A DNA stretch of 56,150 bases, filler included, from Dugesia japonica (taxonomy: Eukaryota), in NCBI GenBank assembly GCA_001938525.1. It is 5 parts of 5 records of this genome, joined end to end, with 100 filler letters (N's around TTAATTAATTAA, not from the genome) between each part and the next. Parts side by side here need not be neighbours in the genome. Positions count along the whole stretch, not along the records: positions 14,726 to 26,291 come from MQRL01498259.1; 4 more parts are not named here. One strand, given 5' to 3'. This document shows, piece by piece, positions 14,726 to 27,129 of this stretch. Made by a program: the position numbers and the translations under genes. Every line of letters starts with the position of its first letter. Position 1 is the stretch's first letter. Below the pieces are notes generated by a model. The model did not search any database, was not told the origin of the DNA, and worked only from the letters and a program-made list of their open reading frames with translations.

Positions 14726-15151
14726 ATATATATATATATATATAAGTAGATGAAGGTAGTAGGGTAATTCGACAGTTAGTCATTAAAAATATATAAAATG
14801 TAAAATTTAAATGCCATACCACATTTATGTTATATGGCATCTACAATACTTATTAATATTTAAATATTGTCATTAATAATCCATAAATATTTCAATATTT
14901 ACAAAAACGTCACTTTTCAAATCCGATGCAAAATAAATTATTTAAAATGATTTAAAATAAATTATTTAAAAATATTTAAAATATTTAAAAATATATAAAA
15001 TGTATAAAAATATAAATTTATATTATATCGGCATCTATATTATCATTAAATAATCCAATCTGAGTGAAAAAAAATAAAAATAAAAAATTATATCAAAANN
15101 NNCCCCCCCTAAATTAAAATAAGGATCCTTGACAGGTAGTCAAAAAATTAT

Positions 15152-15244
15152 AATCCTGAATCCTGAATCCTGAATCCTGAATCCTGAATCATGAATCCAA
15201 AATCCTGAATCCTGAATCCTGAATCCTGAATCATGAATCCTGAA
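15152..15244. repeat. Heptamer tandem array (AATCCTG) x ~13
   Basis: Read directly; lies 70 nt upstream of the pPolB ATG. Confidence 0.95.
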
Positions 15245-15314
15245 TTTTTCCTTTAGAAAATATAATTTTATCTGAAGAGGTCATAAGAGGTGGCCCAAAT
15301 TTTACCTATAGAAA

Positions 15315-18300
15315 ATGGCTACGGCAGAAACAACCATGAGAACAATACCATTTAAATGTAAAAATTGTGGAGGAAAATTTAAAAATTCAACAGGTTTATT
15401 AACTCATTTAAAATCAAAATCATGTACAAGACCTAAAGAGAAAATTTATACTTGCACAAGATGTTTTAGTAGATTTGAAACTTTAAATGGATTAGATAAA
15501 CATAAAAAATCATCATTTTGTTGGAATCCAATTAGTGTAAGTTTACGTTGCAATGACTGTAAGAGAGATTTTAAAAGACAAGATCAAGCTAAAAGACATT
15601 TCAATGGGGAAGAACATAAAAACACTGTTAGAAGAAATCAACATTTACAACGGATTCAAGAATTAGAACAAAATGAACTTGAAGCTCCTGAAGATGAACC
15701 ATCAATAACTCCAACAAAAGAAAATTTATTTAATTCCGAAACATATCCCGATCATGAAATTGAAATTGGAGAAGATTCAATTTTGAAAATGAAAAAAGAT
15801 GTCAGTAGTATAAATTCACAATCAATATTAGATTTCCAACAAGAGATTACAGAAATAGTAAATAAAGTTTATGATAGTCAAGGAAGAGTTAAATTTAAAT
15901 TGTCTGTAACAGCCCAATATAATAAAGAAAATAAGACAGCCCTTTTCAATTCATATGCCCTGAATAATATTGTTTTAATAAAAAGGAAAATTCCAAAGAT
16001 TACTGCCGATGCATTAAAACATGCACAAAAATATGTTATATACGAAGCAAGAATCGAATCAAATTGGAATATAGAATTTATTACTGATTATAAACTTGAA
16101 TTTGTTAGTTATCAATCAATAGTTGGAGGAACATATCGAGAATTACCATTTTCAAAAAATGGAGTAGTTAATATAAGAAATTATGATAATAAATGTTTCT
16201 TATATTCAATCTTAGCCCACAGATACAATAATTTTGACCAACCAACACGTGTAGGTAATTATATTAATCGTTTAGGAGAATTAAAATATAGTGATTTAGA
16301 TTTCCCAATAACACTAGATGAGATAAAAAAATTTGAAAGATTAAATGATTGGAAAATAAATGTTTTAGAAGTAAATGCAAATAAAAAAATAAAACCACTT
16401 AGAATTAAACATTATGAAACAAAAACCAAACCTGAAGAAAATAAATGTAATTTATTAATTTACAAAAATCATTATATGCTATGTAGAGATGTTAATGTTT
16501 TTGCTCGAGATGAAAAAAATGCAAATAAATTATGTTTAGGATGTATGAATGCGTATAATAGTGAAAATTTATTAATAGATCATCAAAGAGAATGTATTCA
16601 TCAAGAACCAGCAAAGATTACATTTCCAAGAGAAGAATATTATGAATTTAAAGATTTTGATTACATAAATAAAATNNNNNNNNNACTATATGGAGATTAT
16701 GAAACTTACACTGACACCAACACTAAAAAACAAAAATCATTATGTTTAGGAGTTCAAATCGTAAGTCAATATCAACATTTACTGGAAAATAAATATTTGA
16801 GATTTACCAAGGAAAATAATATTGAAAATTTTTTAAAATTTCTAAAAGATATTAATGAAAGGGTTGATTTAATTTTGGATGAAAAATTAATAACAATATA
16901 CACTGGAACCGACCACCCTAATTTCATACCAAATCAAAAATGTAGATATTGTGAGAAACCAATAACTGAAAAGCAAGTAATTGATCATGATCACTTTGAT
17001 GGAAAATTTCGCGGATACGCACATCAAGTATGTATACTTAATGATCGATCCATAAAAAATTTATTTATTCCATTTTATTTCCACAATGGAGCCGGCTATG
17101 ATAACCATTTATTTTTTCGGGAATTAATGACAAAATATCCCGATGATGTTAAAAAAATAATACTCCATTCCGATGAGGAATATATTGCATTCCATTATAG
17201 AAAAATTAGGTTCCTGGATTCCAATAAATTATGCCCATTTACACCAGTAGAAAAAATGGGTAAAATGTTACTAAAAGCAAATAAATTTCCAATTACCCAA
17301 TCTCATGGTTTAATCCCAAAGAAGGTACATTATCCCTATTCCTATGTTAAAGGAAAAGATTTTAATGAAGTTCAAGAATTATTAAAAAGAAATTATACCC
17401 CAACAAAAGATGATTTCTATAATGATCTAAGAGAATCCCCAATGAGTGAAAATGATTATCAACAATTTTTACATGACTTCCAACCATTTAATAACATGTT
17501 AAAATATACTCATCATTATAATAAATTAGATGTAACAATACTTGCTGATTTTATTGAAACACTCAGAGACTTTTCTTTAAAATATTATAAAATCGATCCG
17601 TGTTATTGCTATACCGCACCAAGTCTAACCTGGAAAGCGGGAATGCGATTTACGAAAGCACAATTAACATATGCTAAACCATGGACTTATGATATCTTTT
17701 TAATGATTGAAAGAGGAATTCGTGGTGGGTATTCCGGATTATGCAGCAGCAGATTAGTATTACCCTTTAACGAAAAAACTCCACATAAATCATTTACTAA
17801 AGATCAAATGGAAGAAATGCAAAAATTAGCAAAAGAAGGAAAACCAATAGATAATTATTTTAGGGAATCATATTTAAAATACATCGATGCAAATTCTCTA
17901 TATGCAAGTGCAATGACTAAACCTTTACCAACTGGTGATATCTTTCCATCAACTGATTTGAATTATCAAAAAGCAACAAGTAGTTATAATTTTATTTATG
18001 AAGTCGATCTTGAATACACGGATACAATTCATGAAAAAACTTATGATTATCCACTGGCACCAGAAGTAGTAAATATTAGAGAAGAAATGTTAGGACCATA
18101 TCAAAAATCCTTCAAGAAAAAATTACCAAATGAAAATATAAAATTAACTCTTAATCAGTATGATAAAAAAAATTATGTTATACTCGGATCAACATTAGAT
18201 CTCTATATTCAAATAGGAATGAAAATAACTAAAATTCATAAAAAATATAAAATGTTAACATCCACATGGCTAAAACCATATATTGAATTTAACATTAAAC

Positions 18301-19799
18301 AGCGAAAAATAGCTAAAGAAAAACATGATGATTTTGGTGATCATTTTTTCAAATTATTAAATAATTCATTTTATGGAAAAACCCTAGAGAATATAAGAAA
18401 TCTGTGTAATGTACAAATTGTTGGAACTGATAAAGAAATACGGAGATTGGCATCAAAACCTTCATATATCGGATGTAAAGTTTTTACTAAAGATGAAGAA
18501 CGAGTTGGTCATGTTGTGGCAATGCATATGCGTAAGCCAAATCTAAAATACGATAAATTTCAATATATTGGTTTCACTATCCTCGAGTATGCTAAAGAAA
18601 TAATGTATAATTTTGTTTATAATGAAATGCAAATAAAATTAGGTAGAAAAAATTATGATATTCATTATTCGGATTCTGTAACCTATGATACTCCAATAAT
18701 AATAAAAGAACTTGGTGAAGAACCTGAAATTAAAATGATATCAGAAATAACTCAAGATTTTAAAGAAAGACCAGACGGCAAAGAATATTCAGAAATAGAA
18801 CATTGTCAAATATGGGCAAAATCTGGATGGGTAAAATTAAATAAAGTAATTAGACACCTTACACATAAAATGATTTATAGAGTTATTACTAATATGGGAG
18901 TAGTGGATGTAACACAGGATCATTCATTATTAGATGAAGATTGTGAAGAAATAAAACCAAGTGATTTAACTCCTGAAACTAAATTACTTCATAAAAGAAT
19001 ATTTAAATTAACTAATAAATATTCCTTTAACGGGATAAATCGAATTATAGAAGATAAAGTATCACTTGCAAAATTATACCATATTGGATCATNATTAGGA
19101 ATGAATTTATTTATTACAGAAGAAGATAATGGATTTAATATTTCGAGATTAAAATTAAAATTAGAAATTCCAACAAATGTACAAAGTGTAAAATTATTAA
19201 GAGAAGGCTTTGAATGGGTATACGACATCGAAACCCAAGATGGAACATTTAATTGTGGATTTCCATTAATAATTAAAAATACGGATTCATTATTTGTTGA
19301 AGTGTATGGAAAAGAAAATTTAACAAAATTAGAAAATACTTTAGGAGATGAACTTTTTCAATTGAAGGATGAGTTACCGAACTGTACCATAACCAAAGCA
19401 TGTTTCATCAAGGCAAAAACATATGGATATGAATACATTAAAGGCGATCAACTTATTTTCGATAAGAAACATAAAGGACTTCAATCTTTTAATAAAATTA
19501 AGATGGATCAATTTGAACAAGTATTAAATAATTCTAAATCAGTAGTTATGGGAACAAATCATTCTATAAAATCAAAAAATCATGAACTTAGAGTAGTTAA
19601 TCAAGATAAGATAGCATTTGGAGCTTATGATGATAAAAGAGTATTATCCAAATATGGAATTAAATCATGGCCAGCTGGAAATAAATATTTCTGTGAAACT
19701 TGTGAAATGTATCATTTAAGAATAGATGAATTAGATAATAAATTACCATGCCAAAATAATAATACTACTACTACTACTACTACAACTACTAATACTTAA
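15315..19799 (+). CDS. polB: Protein-primed family B DNA polymerase polyprotein (Zn fingers - TP/vOTU - exonuclease with HNH/EndoVII insert - polymerase) containing an intein
   Basis: Exo I YGDYET, Exo II FHNGAGYDNH, Exo III YNKLDV, RGG, motif A YIDANSLYASAM, motif B KLLNNSFYGK, motif C YSD|TDS split by 202 aa, KTY and YDDKR. Ns at 16676-16684 and 19093. Confidence 0.96.
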   Translation: MATAETTMRTIPFKCKNCGGKFKNSTGLLTHLKSKSCTRPKEKIYTCTRCFSRFETLNGLDKHKKSSFCWNPISVSLRCNDCKRDFKRQDQAKRHFNGEEHKNTVRRNQHLQRIQELEQNELEAPEDEPSITPTKENLFNSETYPDHEIEIGEDSILKMKKDVSSINSQSILDFQQEITEIVNKVYDSQGRVKFKLSVTAQYNKENKTALFNSYALNNIVLIKRKIPKITADALKHAQKYVIYEARIESNWNIEFITDYKLEFVSYQSIVGGTYRELPFSKNGVVNIRNYDNKCFLYSILAHRYNNFDQPTRVGNYINRLGELKYSDLDFPITLDEIKKFERLNDWKINVLEVNANKKIKPLRIKHYETKTKPEENKCNLLIYKNHYMLCRDVNVFARDEKNANKLCLGCMNAYNSENLLIDHQRECIHQEPAKITFPREEYYEFKDFDYINKXXXXLYGDYETYTDTNTKKQKSLCLGVQIVSQYQHLLENKYLRFTKENNIENFLKFLKDINERVDLILDEKLITIYTGTDHPNFIPNQKCRYCEKPITEKQVIDHDHFDGKFRGYAHQVCILNDRSIKNLFIPFYFHNGAGYDNHLFFRELMTKYPDDVKKIILHSDEEYIAFHYRKIRFLDSNKLCPFTPVEKMGKMLLKANKFPITQSHGLIPKKVHYPYSYVKGKDFNEVQELLKRNYTPTKDDFYNDLRESPMSENDYQQFLHDFQPFNNMLKYTHHYNKLDVTILADFIETLRDFSLKYYKIDPCYCYTAPSLTWKAGMRFTKAQLTYAKPWTYDIFLMIERGIRGGYSGLCSSRLVLPFNEKTPHKSFTKDQMEEMQKLAKEGKPIDNYFRESYLKYIDANSLYASAMTKPLPTGDIFPSTDLNYQKATSSYNFIYEVDLEYTDTIHEKTYDYPLAPEVVNIREEMLGPYQKSFKKKLPNENIKLTLNQYDKKNYVILGSTLDLYIQIGMKITKIHKKYKMLTSTWLKPYIEFNIKQRKIAKEKHDDFGDHFFKLLNNSFYGKTLENIRNLCNVQIVGTDKEIRRLASKPSYIGCKVFTKDEERVGHVVAMHMRKPNLKYDKFQYIGFTILEYAKEIMYNFVYNEMQIKLGRKNYDIHYSDSVTYDTPIIIKELGEEPEIKMISEITQDFKERPDGKEYSEIEHCQIWAKSGWVKLNKVIRHLTHKMIYRVITNMGVVDVTQDHSLLDEDCEEIKPSDLTPETKLLHKRIFKLTNKYSFNGINRIIEDKVSLAKLYHIGSXLGMNLFITEEDNGFNISRLKLKLEIPTNVQSVKLLREGFEWVYDIETQDGTFNCGFPLIIKNTDSLFVEVYGKENLTKLENTLGDELFQLKDELPNCTITKACFIKAKTYGYEYIKGDQLIFDKKHKGLQSFNKIKMDQFEQVLNNSKSVVMGTNHSIKSKNHELRVVNQDKIAFGAYDDKRVLSKYGIKSWPAGNKYFCETCEMYHLRIDELDNKLPCQNNNTTTTTTTTTNT
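18675..19280 (+). mobile_element. Mini-intein (202 aa) at the pol-c site of pPolB
   Basis: Block A SVTYDTPIII, block B VDVTQDHSL (TxxH), block F VYDIETQDGTF, terminal KN followed by Thr+1. Removal restores YSDTDS. Confidence 0.95.
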
Positions 19800-19834
19800 T
19801 TTTTTATTATAATAAAAGAATAGTAAAAAGCATA

Positions 19835-20454
19835 ATGAATATTACTGAAGAAGAGTTATTAAAATTAGTAAATTCTGATAAATGTAAATCAGTAAGAATA
19901 GATGGTAAAAATTATTGGATTAGTAAAAAAGTAAAAAATGAAATTAAAAATCATCCAAAATATAAAGAAGGTGGATTTGCATTCCTAGCCGCAATTCCAG
20001 CCATAATAGCCGGATTGGCAGGAACAGCTGGTATCGCATCAGGAATAGCGAGTACTGTTGCTAATTCAAAACAAGCAATCAAAATTCAGAAAGAAACAGA
20101 TTTATTAGGAAGCGAAGCTGCCAAAGGTAAAGGATTATACTTAAAAAAAGACGAAGGAACTGAAAGCCACAAAGGAACTGGATTATACTTAAAAAATGAC
20201 GAAGGACAAGGATTATACTTAAAATCTGACTCTAATGATAAAACAAAACCAACTCCGTTGGATCTGGTATTTATTTAAAACCATATGAAGNNNNNGCAAT
20301 TCATAAATATTTAAAAAATATTTTCGATGATGTAAAATTAAAAGATTCAACTAAAAAATTTAAAGATGGAATTGAAATAATACAACAGGGTGATGGTTTA
20401 TTTTTAAAGCCTTATAATTATTATGATAAAAATGGACATTCGGAAGAGGATTAA
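19835..20454 (+). CDS. Polinton core/membrane-active (pX-like) protein with GxGL(Y/F)LK repeats; frameshift near 20250
   Basis: KEGG|FAFLAAIPAIIAGLAGTAGIASGIA hydrophobic segment after an adenain-like xGG site. Three GxGLYLK repeats lie in ORF 19835-20278 and two more (GSGIYLKPY, GDGLFLKPY) downstream in a shifted frame ending at TAA 20454. Confidence 0.7.
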
Positions 20455-21337
20455 AGTATTAGAACAAATAATAGAATCTAGGAAAAGATATGATGATTAT
20501 TTTACTGCCAGTCACCTTAATGCTAATAATTTACAAAGTGAATTACGTGTTTTACAAAAATCAATTATTGATGCAATTAATACAGAAAAATTAATTACAG
20601 AAAAACCAAAAGTAATAGATAAAGATAAACTTGAAGCTAAACCCGATGAAGATAAACTTGAAGCTAAAAAAATAATTAAAGAAGAAATAAAACCTCCAAA
20701 ATTCATTATCAATATACCTGATGATATTGATCAAATTTTAAAACAAAAAACTACAACACTATTTTATCCAAAGAATACAATTATTTATGAAAGTCAATTA
20801 GGTCCAAATTTAACACCCCAAGAATGTGAATATCCAGTAGCAGAAAAAAAATATCGAATATTTCATTATCCAATTACAAAAGTAAATATTATTTTTTTCA
20901 ATGATGGTGCTAATTTAAGAATGTCAATTAATGAATATGTTTATAATTATAGTGAAATATTTTTAAATATAATTTTAGGTAATAAAAATAAAATAAAAAA
21001 TACTAAAGAAACAAAAAATTATCTTGAAATATATTTTGATAAAGTAGTAGTTAATAAAGATCCAAATAACACCTATTATAGTTTTTTAGAAAATAAATTA
21101 AATCCTCCCAAGACACGTTCTAAAAGTGTTCCGAAAAATAGCAAAGCACATAAAGGTAAAGGATTAAATAGTCCAATGAAATTATTTGAAAAATTAACAT
21201 TACTAATTTCGGCAACAAAATCCGGACACGATAATTTAGAAAATGATATTAAAAAAGTTTGTAAAAAATTAAAGATGATGAGATTACTTTCTGATAAAAT
21301 TTATGATAAATATAAGAGTAAATATTTTGATAAATAA
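20423..21337 (+). CDS. Conserved Polinton protein of unknown function
   Basis: 304-aa ORF; the C-terminal GKGL..P.KLFEKLTLLISATKSGHDN...I pattern resembles the Polinton 'LxLLxxxxxAGN' tail. Confidence 0.7.
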   Translation: MIKMDIRKRIKVLEQIIESRKRYDDYFTASHLNANNLQSELRVLQKSIIDAINTEKLITEKPKVIDKDKLEAKPDEDKLEAKKIIKEEIKPPKFIINIPDDIDQILKQKTTTLFYPKNTIIYESQLGPNLTPQECEYPVAEKKYRIFHYPITKVNIIFFNDGANLRMSINEYVYNYSEIFLNIILGNKNKIKNTKETKNYLEIYFDKVVVNKDPNNTYYSFLENKLNPPKTRSKSVPKNSKAHKGKGLNSPMKLFEKLTLLISATKSGHDNLENDIKKVCKKLKMMRLLSDKIYDKYKSKYFDK

Positions 21338-21525
21338 TGGCCCATGCAGTGGGCTTTGTAAATTATAAATTAAAATGTGTCATCCCCAAACGATTAATCG
21401 TATTGGATTGTCACACTTACATCTAGTAATTAATAAAGCCTGCTACGCAGGCATAATTTTAAAAAATATCGTTTAGGGATGTCAAATGTAAAATAACGAC
21501 ATGCATGTCGCAAGTTTACTAAAAT

Positions 21526-22191
21526 TTATAATCGATATCTCCTCAAGTGTTCTAAAATTGAAATTGGCTCTTGGTTAAAATCAATAGGTCTAAAATCTTG
21601 ATCTACAACTTTAAATTCCAAATCTGTAATATATTTTGTATTTAATTTTNNNNNNNNNNNNNNNNNNNNNNNNNNNNNNNNNNNNNNNNNNNNNNNNNNN
21701 NNNNNNGATGGAAATGAATATAATAAATTTACCGGCACTCCATTAATATAATTTGGTTGAATGATATTACAAGTTACATTTATCATGCTAACCCTTGAAA
21801 TGTCACATTTATTTAATGAAGTATAATTTCCTGGTTTATAAGTTCCTGGTGTAAAACCTGTAATTTTATTAAGAAAACATTTCTCATTAAAACTCAATGT
21901 ATTATCTTCTAATTTTAAATTACATTTTGTTGTTGATGTATCAATAATTATTTCAATTTTAAAATCTTTTAATCGATTTGACATCTCTTCTACTTCATAT
22001 GCACTGGGTTCAAGTTTTTCTTCTTTACCATTAATGTTAAATTTATTATTTTCCACAGTGACATTAAAAATGATATTGTAACATGCAAAACATAATAATC
22101 CTAATTCATACTCTGCATCTAATTCTATAGGATAAGTTAAATGCATTCTTAAATTATTTTCTTTATTAACTATTAAGAATTGGTTTGACAT
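21526..22191 (-). CDS. Minor capsid protein (penton, single jelly-roll)
   Basis: PIELDAEYELGL, FNVTVENNKF, AYEV, VTCNII..NYING...LLYSF and DQDFRPIDFNQEP are Polinton penton motifs. Confidence 0.85.
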   Translation of the reverse strand: MSNQFLIVNKENNLRMHLTYPIELDAEYELGLLCFACYNIIFNVTVENNKFNINGKEEKLEPSAYEVEEMSNRLKDFKIEIIIDTSTTKCNLKLEDNTLSFNEKCFLNKITGFTPGTYKPGNYTSLNKCDISRVSMINVTCNIIQPNYINGVPVNLLYSFPXXXXXXXXXXXXXXXXXXXXKLNTKYITDLEFKVVDQDFRPIDFNQEPISILEHLRRYRL

Positions 22192-22478
22192 TTTATTATA
22201 GGATAATTTAGGAAGCGAAGCTTCCTTTTGTTAATCTTCACTACTTATGTTAAATGTAAAATGCCAATACGATTAATCGTACTGGAAAATGACACACACA
22301 CTAATTACTAGAGTTTATTAAAGCCTGCTACGCAGACTAAACGATTAATCGTACTGGAAATGACACACTAATTATTAGTACTAGCATTTAATAGGGCCAT
22401 GCATGGCCCATTTAATTTAAATACCAAGTTTCAATTGCATTTCTCTAATAACTTTACTTTGATTTTCAACTAATGATT

Positions 22479-23045
22479 TTAATGAAACATCTNNNNNNNN
22501 NNNNNNNNNNNNNNNNCAGATTTATTTTTCAAATGTTTATTTCCAGATATTATTTCATGTACGTCATTTACCATATTTTTACTAATTACCAATTCTTCAT
22601 CAGTTAATATTTCATCATTAACAGCTTTCTGTTGAAAGAGAAATAATTTATTTTTAACAGCTTCAAGTTTTTTAATTAATTTTTCATATCTTTCTTTTCT
22701 AGTTTTTATTACTGATGAATTTATTGTTCCTATTACAGGTAGTACGGAAATTGCCCCTGTCAATATAGGAATGCCAATTGTTACTAAAGGTACTCCAACT
22801 GGGGCAATTAAAATGACTCCGGCAATCCCAATACCTGCAGAAACAACTATTTGAGTAATTTTAATACTTGAATCAATTCTGTTCCATCTTTTATATATTT
22901 TTTTATAATGATTAATTTTATCTTTTATAAAGAATAAATCATTCTCGAAATCCTTAATCCTTGATAATGCTAATTTATTTTTTAAATCTAAAATTGTATA
23001 GTTTTTACTTTCATCAATGTTTGGATATAAACTTTCTTCATTCAT
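22479..23045 (-). CDS. Polinton hydrophobic-hairpin (putative 2-TM) protein
   Basis: SLYP start, YKKIYKRW, ~45-aa Gly/aliphatic hairpin flanked by helices; 3' end in an N gap. Confidence 0.7.
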   Translation of the reverse strand: MNEESLYPNIDESKNYTILDLKNKLALSRIKDFENDLFFIKDKINHYKKIYKRWNRIDSSIKITQIVVSAGIGIAGVILIAPVGVPLVTIGIPILTGAISVLPVIGTINSSVIKTRKERYEKLIKKLEAVKNKLFLFQQKAVNDEILTDEELVISKNMVNDVHEIISGNKHLKNKSXXXXXXXXXMFH

Positions 23046-23065
23046 TTTTTAAAGATAAAAATTAC

Positions 23066-24178
23066 TCATTTAGGTTTTTTTAATGAAATATAAATTCTAT
23101 GAATGTAAAGATTTTTAGGTATTTCTATTTCAATAACATTATGAATCTTTGGTATTGGGGTTTGTTTTTTTAAAAAATTAAGACTTGATGAAGTTACTGC
23201 AAAGATACTTAATATAAATAAACTCTTAGTAATAAGTTTTTGTTTATCTACTAATATATTAACTTTTTCTATTTCACCTATTTTATTATAACCCCAAACG
23301 GTAACCCAAAAAACTTTCTTAAAAACTCCAGTTACAGTAATTTTTAATGAGTCTTCAACATACCAATGAAAACGTTCACCGGAAATTTTTAATAATCCAT
23401 TTATTCTTAAAAATTCAATATTAGTAATATTCATATCAGGATAATTTTTAAAAGAATAACATGGGAGTTTTACATTTAAAATTGTATAACAAAAACCAAA
23501 TATTAAATCCGATTTAACATCAGGTAATAACTTTTCCATTTCTGTATATAGGAAATAATTATAAATTAATAATTTCAATTTATATAAAACATACTCAGCT
23601 TTATTTTTTTTATAATCTTGAATTAAATTATTAATTTTTTCAACATCCTTGAAGAGAACCCCATGTTTTATTTCATTAAATTCTTCAAAATTTTTAATTT
23701 TTTTATTAAGATTTTCAATAAAATATAAATGATCTAGATAAGTTTTCTTATTTAAATTCTCATGTAAAATATTAATTTTATTTGTTAATAATTTAATTTC
23801 CCCATCAAAATCTTCATTATAAATTTCATTTATTTTAAATAATAAATCAGTTTTTTTAAATGGTAAAACTGTTGATTTTAAATTTTGAATGTCAGAATTT
23901 ATTTTATTAAATGTTTCTTGATTATAGTTTTTTGTTAACTTATTAATTTTATCATTTATAGTTTCAATTTTATCTTCTAATTGTTTTATGTATTTTAAAT
24001 TAACTGCATCAGAAAGATCTTTGGGATCATCTTTTATTTTTAAAGTTGTTATTGTATCTCCAGATTCATTTACAAATTTATTTTCATTTTTAGATTCTGA
24101 TATTCTAATTTTAGAATCAACTTTTTTTAATATTTCTTTTGAATTTATATTTTTTTTCGTTTGACCAAATTTATTCAT
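23066..24178 (-). CDS. Putative fibre/spike-like protein
   Basis: Probable start MNKFG (ATG 24178), PKDLSDAVNLKY fibre-type motif, long coiled-coil and beta-rich C-terminus. Confidence 0.55.
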   Translation of the reverse strand: MNKFGQTKKNINSKEILKKVDSKIRISESKNENKFVNESGDTITTLKIKDDPKDLSDAVNLKYIKQLEDKIETINDKINKLTKNYNQETFNKINSDIQNLKSTVLPFKKTDLLFKINEIYNEDFDGEIKLLTNKINILHENLNKKTYLDHLYFIENLNKKIKNFEEFNEIKHGVLFKDVEKINNLIQDYKKNKAEYVLYKLKLLIYNYFLYTEMEKLLPDVKSDLIFGFCYTILNVKLPCYSFKNYPDMNITNIEFLRINGLLKISGERFHWYVEDSLKITVTGVFKKVFWVTVWGYNKIGEIEKVNILVDKQKLITKSLFILSIFAVTSSSLNFLKKQTPIPKIHNVIEIEIPKNLYIHRIYISLKKPK

Positions 24179-24297
24179 TATCTTATTTCTTATAATAAAT
24201 ATTTGGGCCACGCAGTGGCCATATTAATTCCTAATATTAAATGTTAATTCCCCAAAACGATTAATCGTATTGGAATCACACATTTAATCTTTAATAA

Positions 24298-24786
24298 ATG
24301 GATTATAATTTATTAGATTTCTTAAAAACATTTGGTATTAATACATTTACAAATTTTGATTTATATTCCATAGCTGATTTTCTAGATTTAGATTTAGAAA
24401 TTTATATGAAGAATGAGATTTTAGAATTAGATGGCACCCGCGAGGGTGCCTACATATTTAATTATCAAAATGAAAATCAAAAAGGAACTCATTGGGTTTG
24501 TTTTTCTAAAGGATATTATTTTGATTCTTTTGGATTAAAACCATTAGAAAATATATCAAAGTATGTGAAAAAATATAACAATATTCAGGTTCAACATTTT
24601 GGTACAAAAATATGTGGTATTTTATGTATTTATTTTTTATTTAAAATTAAAGATACTGAGTTCGATGAAATAATAAATGAAATGAAAAAATTATATGATA
24701 AATTAGATGCCAATACGATTAATCGTAATGGGGAATTAAATTATAATATTTTAAAGGAAGCTTCGCTTCCTAAATTTTTACTTTAA
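24298..24786 (+). CDS. Adenain-like (C5) capsid-maturation cysteine protease
   Basis: GTHWVC, YFDSFG and Q...ICGILC give the His-Asp-Gln-Cys catalytic set. Confidence 0.92.
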   Translation: MDYNLLDFLKTFGINTFTNFDLYSIADFLDLDLEIYMKNEILELDGTREGAYIFNYQNENQKGTHWVCFSKGYYFDSFGLKPLENISKYVKKYNNIQVQHFGTKICGILCIYFLFKIKDTEFDEIINEMKKLYDKLDANTINRNGELNYNILKEASLPKFLL

Positions 24787-25175
24787 TAAATAGCATAATA
24801 AATAGAATAATAGAATATGAAGAATCTTATTAATATTTTAAATGAAGCAGTTGTAGAAATATCATTATTACCACAAGATGATAATGATTATTTTTTTAAA
24901 CATTTTTAAAATAATTTAATTGATGTAATAAGAATTATTGAGAAAATGGAAATAAAAAATAAATGTATAATAAAACATAATAACAAAAGTAAGAAAAAAA
25001 GTATAAGTCCAATTTATGATGGATCAATATTTGAAAATGAATTTGAAATTGAAAGTGAAAATAATATAATAAAAAGTAAGAAAAAAAATAAGAGTAAAAT
25101 AAAAGGTTAGTATTTTCAGACCAGGTTCCTAGTTCTTTCAGACCAAGGCACATGATTAAAATTATCTTCTAATAA

Positions 25176-26136
25176 ATGAGTAAAGAAATATTAGATAAAA
25201 CAATTGAAAGAATTAATAAATTGTATGATCTTAAACCAAATATTGATAAAGTAAAAGCAGAGGAAAGATTGAAAGAATTATTAAAACAAGATATTAATGG
25301 AAATTATATACATAAGAATAAATTATGTGTGAAATGTGAAGAAAAACTAAGAGATATTAGACAACAAAGAATAAATGAAGCTTATAATAAAAGTAAACCA
25401 AAAGGAACACAAGAAGAAAGAGATCACATGTTTGATGAAATTTTAATTGCCCAATTGGAAAGACATTTAAAAAACACACTTTATTCTAAAGCATTTATGT
25501 ATAACCTTAAAATTGATAAAGAAGCAATGGAAATGGGTACTAAAGCAGTAGATAAATTTGAAGATAAGTTACTTGATGATTTACTAAATGAAATAATAGA
25601 TAAAAGAGTAGATGATCAAATAGCAAACATGAGAATTGTATTAGCAACTGATAATAATATTTTTACTAAATGTAAATTTTTAAATTCATTACAAAATGTT
25701 GAAAATCCATATGATTCAACTGCATTAGTTGTTTATGGTCTTGAAGAAGAGTCATTAGAAAAATTAACTTTAGATATTAAAAAAGAATATCAAATTGTAA
25801 ACTTTATCAATAAATGTACTTTATTTTCACATGCCAAATTAGGAATGTTATTTAAACAATTAAAAAATCATTTTAAAACTAATAATAAAATAGAAAAATA
25901 TTTAAATTCAATTGGTATNNNNNTATAAAATAAATTATGTTAATAAAATAATAAAATTTACTAATTTAGCTGAAAGATTTCCAGAAATATTATCTTCAAT
26001 TTTACCAATAACTAAAATTATAAAACATTTCCCACAAATAGAAGGATATGTGGATGAGATATTAGTAGAAAGAAATTCACATTTGGCAATTGAAAATGAT
26101 GATACTGATATTGAAAGTGATTTTGAAAGTGATTAA
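25176..26136 (+). CDS. Hypothetical ~320-aa Polinton protein (ORFs 25176-25928 and 25912-26136 probably join across 5 N)
   Basis: Two overlapping same-strand ORFs broken only at the N run 25919-25923; acidic tail. Confidence 0.65.
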
Positions 26137-27129
26137 TTTAATACTAGATGTCCAGTACGATTAATCGTATTGGGTTATCACACTTAGAATAAACCATCCA
26201 ATAATTCATCTGATTCTTTATTTAAGTAAAAATAATTATACTTGGTCTTCCAGTGAAGATTAACCTCGTGATCATACTCTAACTTATTATTNNNNNNNNN
26301 NNNNNNNNNNNNNNNNNNNNNNNNNNNNNNNNNNNTTAATTAATTAANNNNNNNNNNNNNNNNNNNNNNNNNNNNNNNNNNNNNNNNNNNNTTATTTTTC
26401 ATTGTTAAACCGGAATATATGTACTATCATTGTAAATAAATATATTGCTACATTTCATACCTTAACCTTCTTTTATTAAAAATATAAAATATAACCTTAA
26501 ATTGGAACACCCTTTATATATAATATTGGAAAATTCAACAATATACACCAAGTTTAAAGATAGGCAATTGTGTTTAATAATGATGATTTGTTTGATTCAC
26601 TTCCATCAAAACACACTTGGAAATCTAAAAAGAATGAGCAATATTATTATACCAAAAGAATAAATTAGGTGAATATTGCACGGATAAGATATTGGATTTG
26701 CAAATACATCCATCAAAAAAGAGACGTTTAGATTCAAAAATAATGATATGAAACCCTATGAAAATAGCGGTAATAGTCAAAAAATTGACTTAGAAGAGAT
26801 TTATGACGNTGAATATTATGATAAAGATGTTATAGATTTAGAGAATAGCATCAAATACAGGAATATTAATTGAGCAATTGAGAGGAATTGGAAACCTCAG
26901 TATTTCTCATACGATAGCAATCATGAACTTCTACAACATAAAATTTTCGCATTTAAAAGAACTTCCATCAGCTCCTTAATTTGAAAACGATTTCATGAAT
27001 AAACTTTAGTATAAAAATGATTAACTTCATATTATTTATTAAAATGATTTTAAAAAACAGTTTCAGGGTATTTAAACTGTTTCAATATAGTCGGAGGCTT
27101 TCTTTTATTACGTAGTATAAGTGCTACAG

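Follow-up and report, generated by a model that had tools for sequence, protein, structure and literature searches.

A predicted mini-intein of the giant-virus pol-c type within motif C of a protein-primed DNA polymerase from a Polinton-like element

The spread of inteins is generally attributed to homing, with alleles that are nearly identical as the targets. In the DNA polymerase (PolB) of Mimivirus, an intein of 351 residues that includes a LAGLIDADG endonuclease occupies the motif Y-G-D|T-D-S, the 'pol-c allele', and uses Ser, Asn and Thr as nucleophiles (PMC549080). The host polymerases of Mimivirus and Megavirus are RNA-primed PolBs (PF00136). In the protein-primed PolBs (pPolBs) of polintons, endonuclease-type inserts of the HNH and VSR kinds are known (PMC11161782, PMC8502044, bioRxiv 10.1101/2023.08.22.554363), and from such inserts a paper of 2024, in which the word 'intein' is mentioned once, conjectured that polinton pPolBs have undergone intein invasions (PMC11161782). 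Here, we describe a pPolB gene in a stretch of 56,150 nucleotides, filler included, from the Dugesia japonica assembly GCA_001938525.1 (the whole stretch is called the window hereafter). The gene lies in the 11.6-kb piece 14726-26291 (MQRL01498259.1), and its motif C is interrupted by 202 codons. The predicted intein encoded there shares the pol-c site and the Ser/Asn/Thr nucleophiles of the Mimivirus intein but lacks the endonuclease, and its host is a protein-primed rather than an RNA-primed polymerase.

The piece contains one long open reading frame (ORF) at 15315..19799 on the + strand, comprising 1494 codons at ~27% G+C with two masked (N) stretches. The polymerase gene appears to be without breaks, since no stop codon or frameshift was seen in it. 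Within this gene, an in-frame insert of 606 nt (202 codons; 18675-19280) separates the two aspartates of motif C, and the translation across it reads I-H-Y-S-D | S-V-T-Y-D-T-P ... V-D-V-T-Q-D-H-S-L ... P-L-I-I-K-N | T-D-S-L-F-V. Both exteins, N and C, were compared with relatives as separate pieces. In 22 of the 23 aligned nearest pPolB relatives, T-D-S or T-D-C directly follows the residue aligned with the last Asp of the N-extein. The C-extein aligns from its residue 1 with relatives P0055 (1106-1243) and P0054 (1007-1146), and with 77 of 120 relatives in all, and none of the 120 nearest pPolB relatives (824-1406 aa) contains a significant match to the 202-residue insert. The insert therefore lies exactly between the two halves of a motif C that is contiguous in the relatives. 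This comparison confirms a precise in-frame insert between Asp and Thr of motif C. Together with the homology and fold described below, it upholds the proposal of an initial annotation, made from the sequence alone, that a pPolB here harbours an intein at its pol-c site (motif C, D|T); the same annotation had noted that the polymerase motif would be whole only after splicing, and the insert indeed parts the Asp from the Thr. The parts of the gene that bear on the insertion are the following.

16689..18674, + strand: exonuclease and polymerase part of the N-extein, ending at the first Asp of motif C (..H-Y-S-D).
18675..19280, + strand: predicted mini-intein of 202 residues with Ser1, Thr80-x-x-His83, Asp184 and Asn202, assigned from homology, conservation, an AlphaFold2 model and Foldseek.
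18675..19010, + strand: N-terminal splicing lobe (intein residues 1-112; blocks A and B), from the conservation profile and the modelled strands 7-87; aligns with residues 1111-1236 of P0001, the pPolB with the nearest intein.
19011..19169, + strand: middle region (intein residues 113-165), a poorly conserved linker followed by a strand, a helix and a hairpin; endonuclease remnant.
19170..19280, + strand: C-terminal splicing lobe (intein residues 166-202; blocks F and G) with a Lys-Asn end, from the conservation profile and the model.
19281..19796, + strand: C-extein, opening with Thr+1, then motif C's second Asp (T-D-S-L-F), and holding a K-x-Y region; aligns with relatives.

The best match of the insert among 5.8 billion proteins searched has E = 2.7e-37, and an exhaustive HMMER scan of 1.84 billion cluster representatives returned 1561 matches at E <= 0.001, 765 of them at E <= 1e-10; the homology of the insert is thus not due to chance. 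Relatives of the insert carry PF14890 and PF14528, the former at E = 1.9e-23 in P0188 and 3e-6 in P0001. All columns without variation among 50 bounded relatives are retained in the 202-residue intein (Ser1, Pro7, His61, Lys65, Arg69, Thr80, Asp82, His83, Leu85, Val182, Asp184, Thr187, Gly195 and Asn202), and all 50 of these relatives have T-D-S after the intein. The nucleophiles and the T-x-x-H motif can be read directly: Ser1, Thr80/His83, Asn202 and Thr+1. An AlphaFold2 model of the 202 residues, built on 20 relatives, is compact (pLDDT 91.3, pTM 0.88), and in a Foldseek search of the PDB its top 50 matches consist entirely of inteins or Hint domains (best E = 3.3e-8, with TM-scores of 0.60/0.70). 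We conclude that the insert is a class-1 intein with, as modelled, the Hint fold. Actual splicing is what the retained residues and the predicted fold would lead one to expect.

Alignment with P0001 pairs intein residues 1-121 with 1111-1236 and residues 128-202 with 1385-1460. From the gap between these segments, ~150 residues of a LAGLIDADG endonuclease are missing, which makes the insert a mini-intein. No LAGLIDADG Pfam match was found anywhere in the window, and no endonuclease Pfam match in the insert. The LAGLIDADG_3 match of P0001 spans 1357-1401, and its end overlaps the part aligned with intein residues 128-144, in agreement with the early suggestion that the middle of the insert holds an endonuclease remnant devoid of LAGLIDADG. 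In relatives, intein residues 111, 115 and 125 are followed by insertions that reach 134, 42 and 86 residues, respectively, and the pLDDT of the model drops to 54 at residues 111-120. The middle region superposes on that of giant-virus mini-inteins of equal length (207 columns, query TM-score 0.86). We considered whether it might be an independent domain with a new function and rejected the idea: the region aligns with the tail of the P0001 endonuclease and recurs in giant-virus mini-inteins. With its endonuclease lost, the intein should no longer be able to home by itself.

The relatives of the intein reside mostly in giant-virus-type polymerases. Among the word-indexed matches, 50 of 53 (E = 2.7e-37 to 1.8e-8) have the junctions ..G-D|S...N|T-D-S..; 49 of these 50 are PF00136-type PolBs, most of them also with PF03104, and the other one is P0001. 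In the representative RNA-primed PolBs, Y-G-D precedes the intein in 92 and the intein starts with S-V in 96. The hosts of the 147 nearest cluster representatives include 112 RNA-primed PolBs, 13 topoisomerases II and no pPolB. In BFVD, a library of predicted viral structures, seven of the top eight matches are to named DNA polymerases of giant viruses (E = 9e-18 to 6e-11, query TM-scores 0.74-0.90), from Pithovirus LCPAC302, Megavirus courdo11, an unknown phycodnavirus, Marseillevirus LCMAC201, Heterosigma akashiwo virus 01, Klosneuvirus KNV1 and Pandoravirus hades. The initial assignment to the giant-virus PolB intein type is therefore supported, with the family at Y-G-D|T-D-S and both Megavirus and Heterosigma akashiwo virus among the structural matches. 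The family also has a cellular member, in Pol delta of Anaeramoeba (PMC10710043), as well as members in topoisomerase II, with the junction D-x-D|S...N|T-D-G, and one in an XRN 5'-3' exonuclease. Since the acidic D | T-D context is common to the PolB and topoisomerase sites, comparison of the junctions points to a short motif, and not a single gene, as the target of the family. The giant-virus pol-c inteins reside in PF00136 + PF03104 hosts, whereas the host here belongs to the PF03175 family. The topoisomerase II and XRN carriers that we recorded are P0219, P0222, P0233, P0237, P0241, P0245, P0259, P0276, P0285, P0304, P0317, P0329, P0330, P0022, P0032, P0326; and P0230.

P0001, a metagenomic protein with PF03175, PF14890 and PF14528, is the only other pPolB that we found to carry an intein of this family. 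Its junctions, D|S...K-N|T-D-S, mark a site identical to that in the window, but its intein has 350 residues and keeps LAGLIDADG, whereas that of the window has 202 and has lost the endonuclease. The two inteins share 46-53% identity by BLASTP, and 51% over 199 columns. They are sisters in 74-84 of 100 neighbour-joining (NJ) bootstraps of the whole alignment (77/100 for the C block, 26/100 for the N block), and P0001 is the nearest neighbour of the window intein in 422 of 500 resamplings among 188 family inteins, bootstraps and resamplings alike being drawn on alignment columns. The polymerase parts of the two proteins, when aligned, do no better than shuffled sequences (score 24 against 19 +/- 5; BLASTP E = 4), and their C-exteins are 27-34% identical. 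This intein has made its way across two widely different families of polymerases, and its giant-virus origin is supported. Its likely history, and the simplest reading of these comparisons, is an ultimate origin in giant-virus RNA-primed PolBs and subsequent presence in at least two deeply diverged pPolB lineages. For that, either one pPolB element must have passed the intein to another, or it must have entered twice from donors that were close relatives. The most recent transfer may have taken place between pPolBs. The initial annotation had proposed a move between a giant-virus PolB and this pPolB, which would imply co-infection: the giant-virus origin is supported, but a direct jump is not established, the nearest intein being that of the diverged pPolB P0001.

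Searches with the window polymerase recovered 232 relatives (best E = 4.7e-128). The closest by identity (38-41%) are on contigs of <4 kb from metagenomes or read archives, and the named relatives in animal assemblies (Nematostella, Ylistrum, Uloborus) have 32-33% BLASTP identity. Pfam PF03175 does not match the window polymerase itself. P0054 and P0055, which are 40-41% identical to it over ~650 columns, match PF03175 at E = 4e-16 and 1e-17, and 9 of 24 members of the pPolB family match this model. Through clear homology to these members, we identify the host polymerase as a PF03175-type pPolB. The polymerase part of its N-extein keeps 52 invariant columns of the polymerase family (alignment A2). 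A profile of the pPolB family searched against the PDB recovered no phi29-type polymerase by sequence. The remaining recognizable features of the polymerase gene, and the only other gene of the piece assigned to a family, are these.

15345..15620, + strand: N-terminal C2H2-type zinc-finger region (aa 11-102), from weak Pfam zf-C2H2 matches and C2H2 fingers found by phmmer in the PDB (E = 1e-5).
16062..16634, + strand: conserved N-terminal domain of the pPolB family (aa ~250-440), with BLASTP matches in 111 of 120 relatives.
16932..17033, + strand: endonuclease-VII-like zinc motif within the exonuclease region (aa 540-573), from Pfam PF02945 (E = 0.0033) and PHROG endonuclease VII (E = 2.8e-5).
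24298..24786, + strand: adenain-like (clan CE, Ulp1-type) cysteine protease of 162 aa, from Pfam Peptidase_C5 (E = 0.021).

Relative P0055 likewise has an N-terminal zinc-finger region (zf-C2H2_jaz/zf-met). A Pfam scan of the domain at aa ~250-440 gave no named family; the corresponding domain of the relatives aligns with residues 17-278 of P0001 with an hhalign probability of 85%, and in polinton pPolBs the TP/vOTU domains occupy the corresponding place (PMC11161782, PMC8502044). PF02945 is matched in 22 of 24 pPolB family members, and this EndoVII-like insert parallels the HNH and VSR inserts reported for other polinton pPolBs. The 590 nt upstream of the polymerase gene are non-coding and have ~21% G+C. 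A 7-nt tandem repeat (~14 units with few variants) is found there at 15124-15266, ~50 nt before the polymerase start codon.

The protease is the sole hallmark of virion maturation found in the piece. Peptidase_C5 matches four of its seven family members weakly, the best PDB matches of the family profile are adenovirus proteases (E = 0.08), and the best match of its model (pLDDT 76) is the adenovirus 2 proteinase (E = 3.7e-4, prob 1.00), with a modest TM-score of 0.48. [quoted passage not shown] The missing hallmark genes may lie outside, as the piece is only 11.6 kb long and cut at both ends, and the ends of the element are probably outside as well. 'Polinton-like' is a fair description. Membership in the Polintons or adintoviruses, as the initial annotation had it, is not established, since integrase, packaging ATPase and capsid genes and terminal repeats are all missing from the piece; nor is an animal host, the closest PolB, protease and intein relatives coming from short metagenome or read-archive contigs.

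Several other sequences of the piece deserve mention. The ORF at 19835-20278 (147 aa) has no family match and encodes a Gly/Ala-rich hydrophobic segment followed by three G-L-Y-L-K-type repeats (DNA repeat 20107-20232); a small virion protein, membrane-active or processed by a protease, is a possible product. Family matches are likewise lacking for five more ORFs, of 188-381 aa (21526-22191, 22479-23045 and 23066-24211 on the - strand; 20423-21337 and 25176-25928 on the + strand). The N-terminal half of the 381-aa product is a long coiled coil, perhaps fibre-like, and the 188-aa product has a hydrophobic core segment. Several of these five ORFs contain masked stretches, and none is long enough for an obvious double jelly-roll capsid protein. 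A 12-nt palindrome occurs in six exact copies where none is expected (21390-21401, 22269-22280, 22341-22352, 24257-24268, 24715-24726 and 26157-26168). It forms the core of a ~22-nt palindromic motif, and five copies are intergenic, at gene starts and ends, with one within the protease ORF (3' part); it could serve the element as a shared promoter, a terminator or a protein-binding site.

Taken together, we consider it highly probable that the insert is a class-1 mini-intein of the giant-virus pol-c family, located at the homologous point of a PF03175-type pPolB in a Polinton-like element with an adenain-like protease. In this scenario, a 1494-residue precursor would be translated in which 202 residues stand between the two catalytic aspartates of motif C. 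An N-O acyl shift by Ser1 would be followed by attack of Thr+1 on the ester, cyclisation of Asn202 would free the intein, and an O-N shift would ligate the exteins into an active polymerase with a contiguous Y-S-D-T-D-S. Replication of the element would depend on splicing, because the motif C aspartates are separated until then. The intein could persist without homing, since nothing short of its exact deletion would leave the active site working.

Some of our observations weigh against this explanation. Pfam Intein_splicing (PF14890) does not match the 202 residues at E <= 1, and phmmer against the PDB with the same residues found only two TFIIB mini-inteins at E = 0.12. The penultimate residue is Lys and the usual His is not present, and one codon of the insert contains a masked base. 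Deep NJ nodes are poorly supported, a clade of the window intein, P0001 and the main giant-virus group being recovered in only 3-24 of 100 bootstraps. Finally, the intein bears no compositional trace of recent transfer, as it does not differ from the host gene in G+C (0.264 versus 0.272) or codon usage (correlation 0.906 versus 0.926 +/- 0.029 for host windows). A PHROG scan of the 202 residues also returned no intein family, and a profile of alignment A1 searched against the PDB was dominated by the PolB C-exteins of fragment sequences. The match to Hint or intein models that the initial annotation called for was thus obtained through PF14890/PF14528 in the relatives, the AlphaFold2 model and Foldseek, but not with Pfam Intein_splicing. 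The penultimate His, which aids Asn cyclisation, is dispensable in some inteins, and Lys-Asn is the commonest end in this intein family (KN 43, HN 11). The equal composition would mean that the transfer was not recent or that the donor was equally A+T-rich.

A giant-virus PolB fragment misassembled into a pPolB contig might be suspected in a short scaffold with N stretches. Yet the reading frame is kept across both junctions, which coincide exactly with the ends of the intein, the insert has no RNA-primed PolB extein sequence on either side, its G+C, GC3 and codon usage are like those of the host gene, its identity to the nearest known relative is only ~50%, and the arrangement recurs in the independent pPolB P0001. 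We regard such a chimera as extremely improbable and rejected it, together with a chance in-frame insert, on the host-like composition and the comparison of junctions and relatives. This copy of the element could also be decaying and no longer functional, with the intein in it a dead relic on which nothing depends, the precursor being left unspliced or not made at all. Loss of the homing endonuclease, failure of the Pfam intein model and the masked intein codon, which could conceal an interruption, would all fit such a relic. Decay is difficult to reconcile, however, with 1494 codons free of stops and frameshifts at ~27% G+C, with the retention of every family-invariant residue of the intein and of the 52 invariant columns of the polymerase, or with the confident and compact intein model, and we consider a relic improbable. 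Slightly less so, though still quite unlikely, is a history in which pPolBs were the old home of the family and seeded the giant-virus PolBs, or in which two independent acquisitions from unsampled giant viruses took place. The low support of the basal nodes of the intein trees (3-24/100) leaves room for these histories, as do the grouping of the window intein with P0001, which comes mainly from the C-terminal block (77/100 versus 26/100 for the N block), and a composition indistinguishable from that of the host gene. Against them, pPolBs account for 0 of the 147 nearest representatives and 1 of the 53 word-indexed matches, and the intein is found in 0 of the 120 relatives of the window polymerase. 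This sporadic occurrence fits pPolBs as recipients rather than as the source.

The identity of the element is a separate matter. There is only slightly less than an even chance, in our view, that instead of an animal Polinton or adintovirus we are dealing with a virus, virophage-like or Polinton-like, whose protist host is also infected by giant viruses, the intein having been passed between polymerase genes that replicated in one infected cell. The closest relatives of the polymerase (P0054, P0055), the protease (P0335-P0340) and the intein (P0001) are all on short metagenome or read-archive contigs and not on animal chromosomes; the intein family is overwhelmingly one of giant-virus-type PolBs and also occurs in the protist Anaeramoeba (PMC10710043); and inteins are reported to be absent from metazoan genomes (PMC5784728). 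The piece has no detected integrase, and the 12-nt palindrome stands beside its genes in six exact copies where none is expected. On the other hand, named relatives of the polymerase are found in the assemblies of Nematostella, Ylistrum and Uloborus, and many others are on megabase contigs. The N-terminal domain and the EndoVII-like insert are common to the window polymerase and these relatives, and the piece offers no capsid or ATPase gene by which to type the element. The stronger proposal, of an animal-associated Polinton/adintovirus-like element whose intein was acquired from giant viruses, passed between unrelated pPolBs and now gates replication through splicing, is unlikely as a whole. 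If true, it would provide the first Hint-domain intein in a genetic element of Metazoa.

Kapitonov and Jurka may have mentioned an intein in a protist Polinton polymerase in 2006, which would lower the novelty of the present case. In the literature searched, we found no description of a Hint intein in the pPolB of a Polinton, Polinton-like virus (PLV) or virophage, and the word 'intein' is missing from the adintovirus and nematode papers (PMC8502044, bioRxiv 10.1101/2023.08.22.554363). As to the novelty suggested at the outset, a second pPolB-borne copy, P0001, was already in public data, and intein invasions had been conjectured (PMC11161782). The significance of the locus lies in the occurrence of one intein family at the same catalytic motif of polymerases that are no longer alignable elsewhere, namely the RNA-primed giant-virus PolBs and two diverged pPolBs. 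With the additional copies in topoisomerase II and an XRN exonuclease, it offers a concrete and testable case of site-directed intein spread across protein families, and it records at the molecular level that genes have flowed between giant viruses and Polinton-like elements. In such an element, protein splicing would also be an obligatory step for the replication enzyme.

Among the systems with which the predicted intein can be compared, archaeal mini-inteins share the Hint fold (TFIIB of Mvu/Mja, 5o9i/5o9j; Pho RadA, 4e2t; Aes123 PolB1, 9hth; Foldseek E = 3e-8 to 2e-6, TM-scores 0.6-0.7), and blocks A and B of 5o9j can be aligned with it by sequence. They differ in their low identity to it (11-19%), in having other hosts or sites and in lacking the family-specific middle region. 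The likeness to giant-virus inteins is closer. Megavirus courdo11 K7YWE8 matches the window model with a query TM-score of 0.90 (E = 8.6e-17, 26% identity), and Heterosigma akashiwo virus 01 Q4JF81 and Pithovirus LCPAC302 A0A481Z7V3 match it over 207-233 aligned columns (TM-scores 0.86-0.87, 27-29% identity). The metagenomic giant-virus-type mini-inteins P0002, P0006, P0010 and P0018, of 218-233 residues, are 39-42% identical to the window intein. Giant-virus mini-inteins have the same site, S-V start, Lys-Asn end and helix-plus-hairpin middle, and it is the class of the host that differs. The host in turn resembles the pPolBs of Polintons/Mavericks and adintoviruses, which are likewise of the PF03175 type, with a long N-terminal extension and an adenain-like protease nearby.

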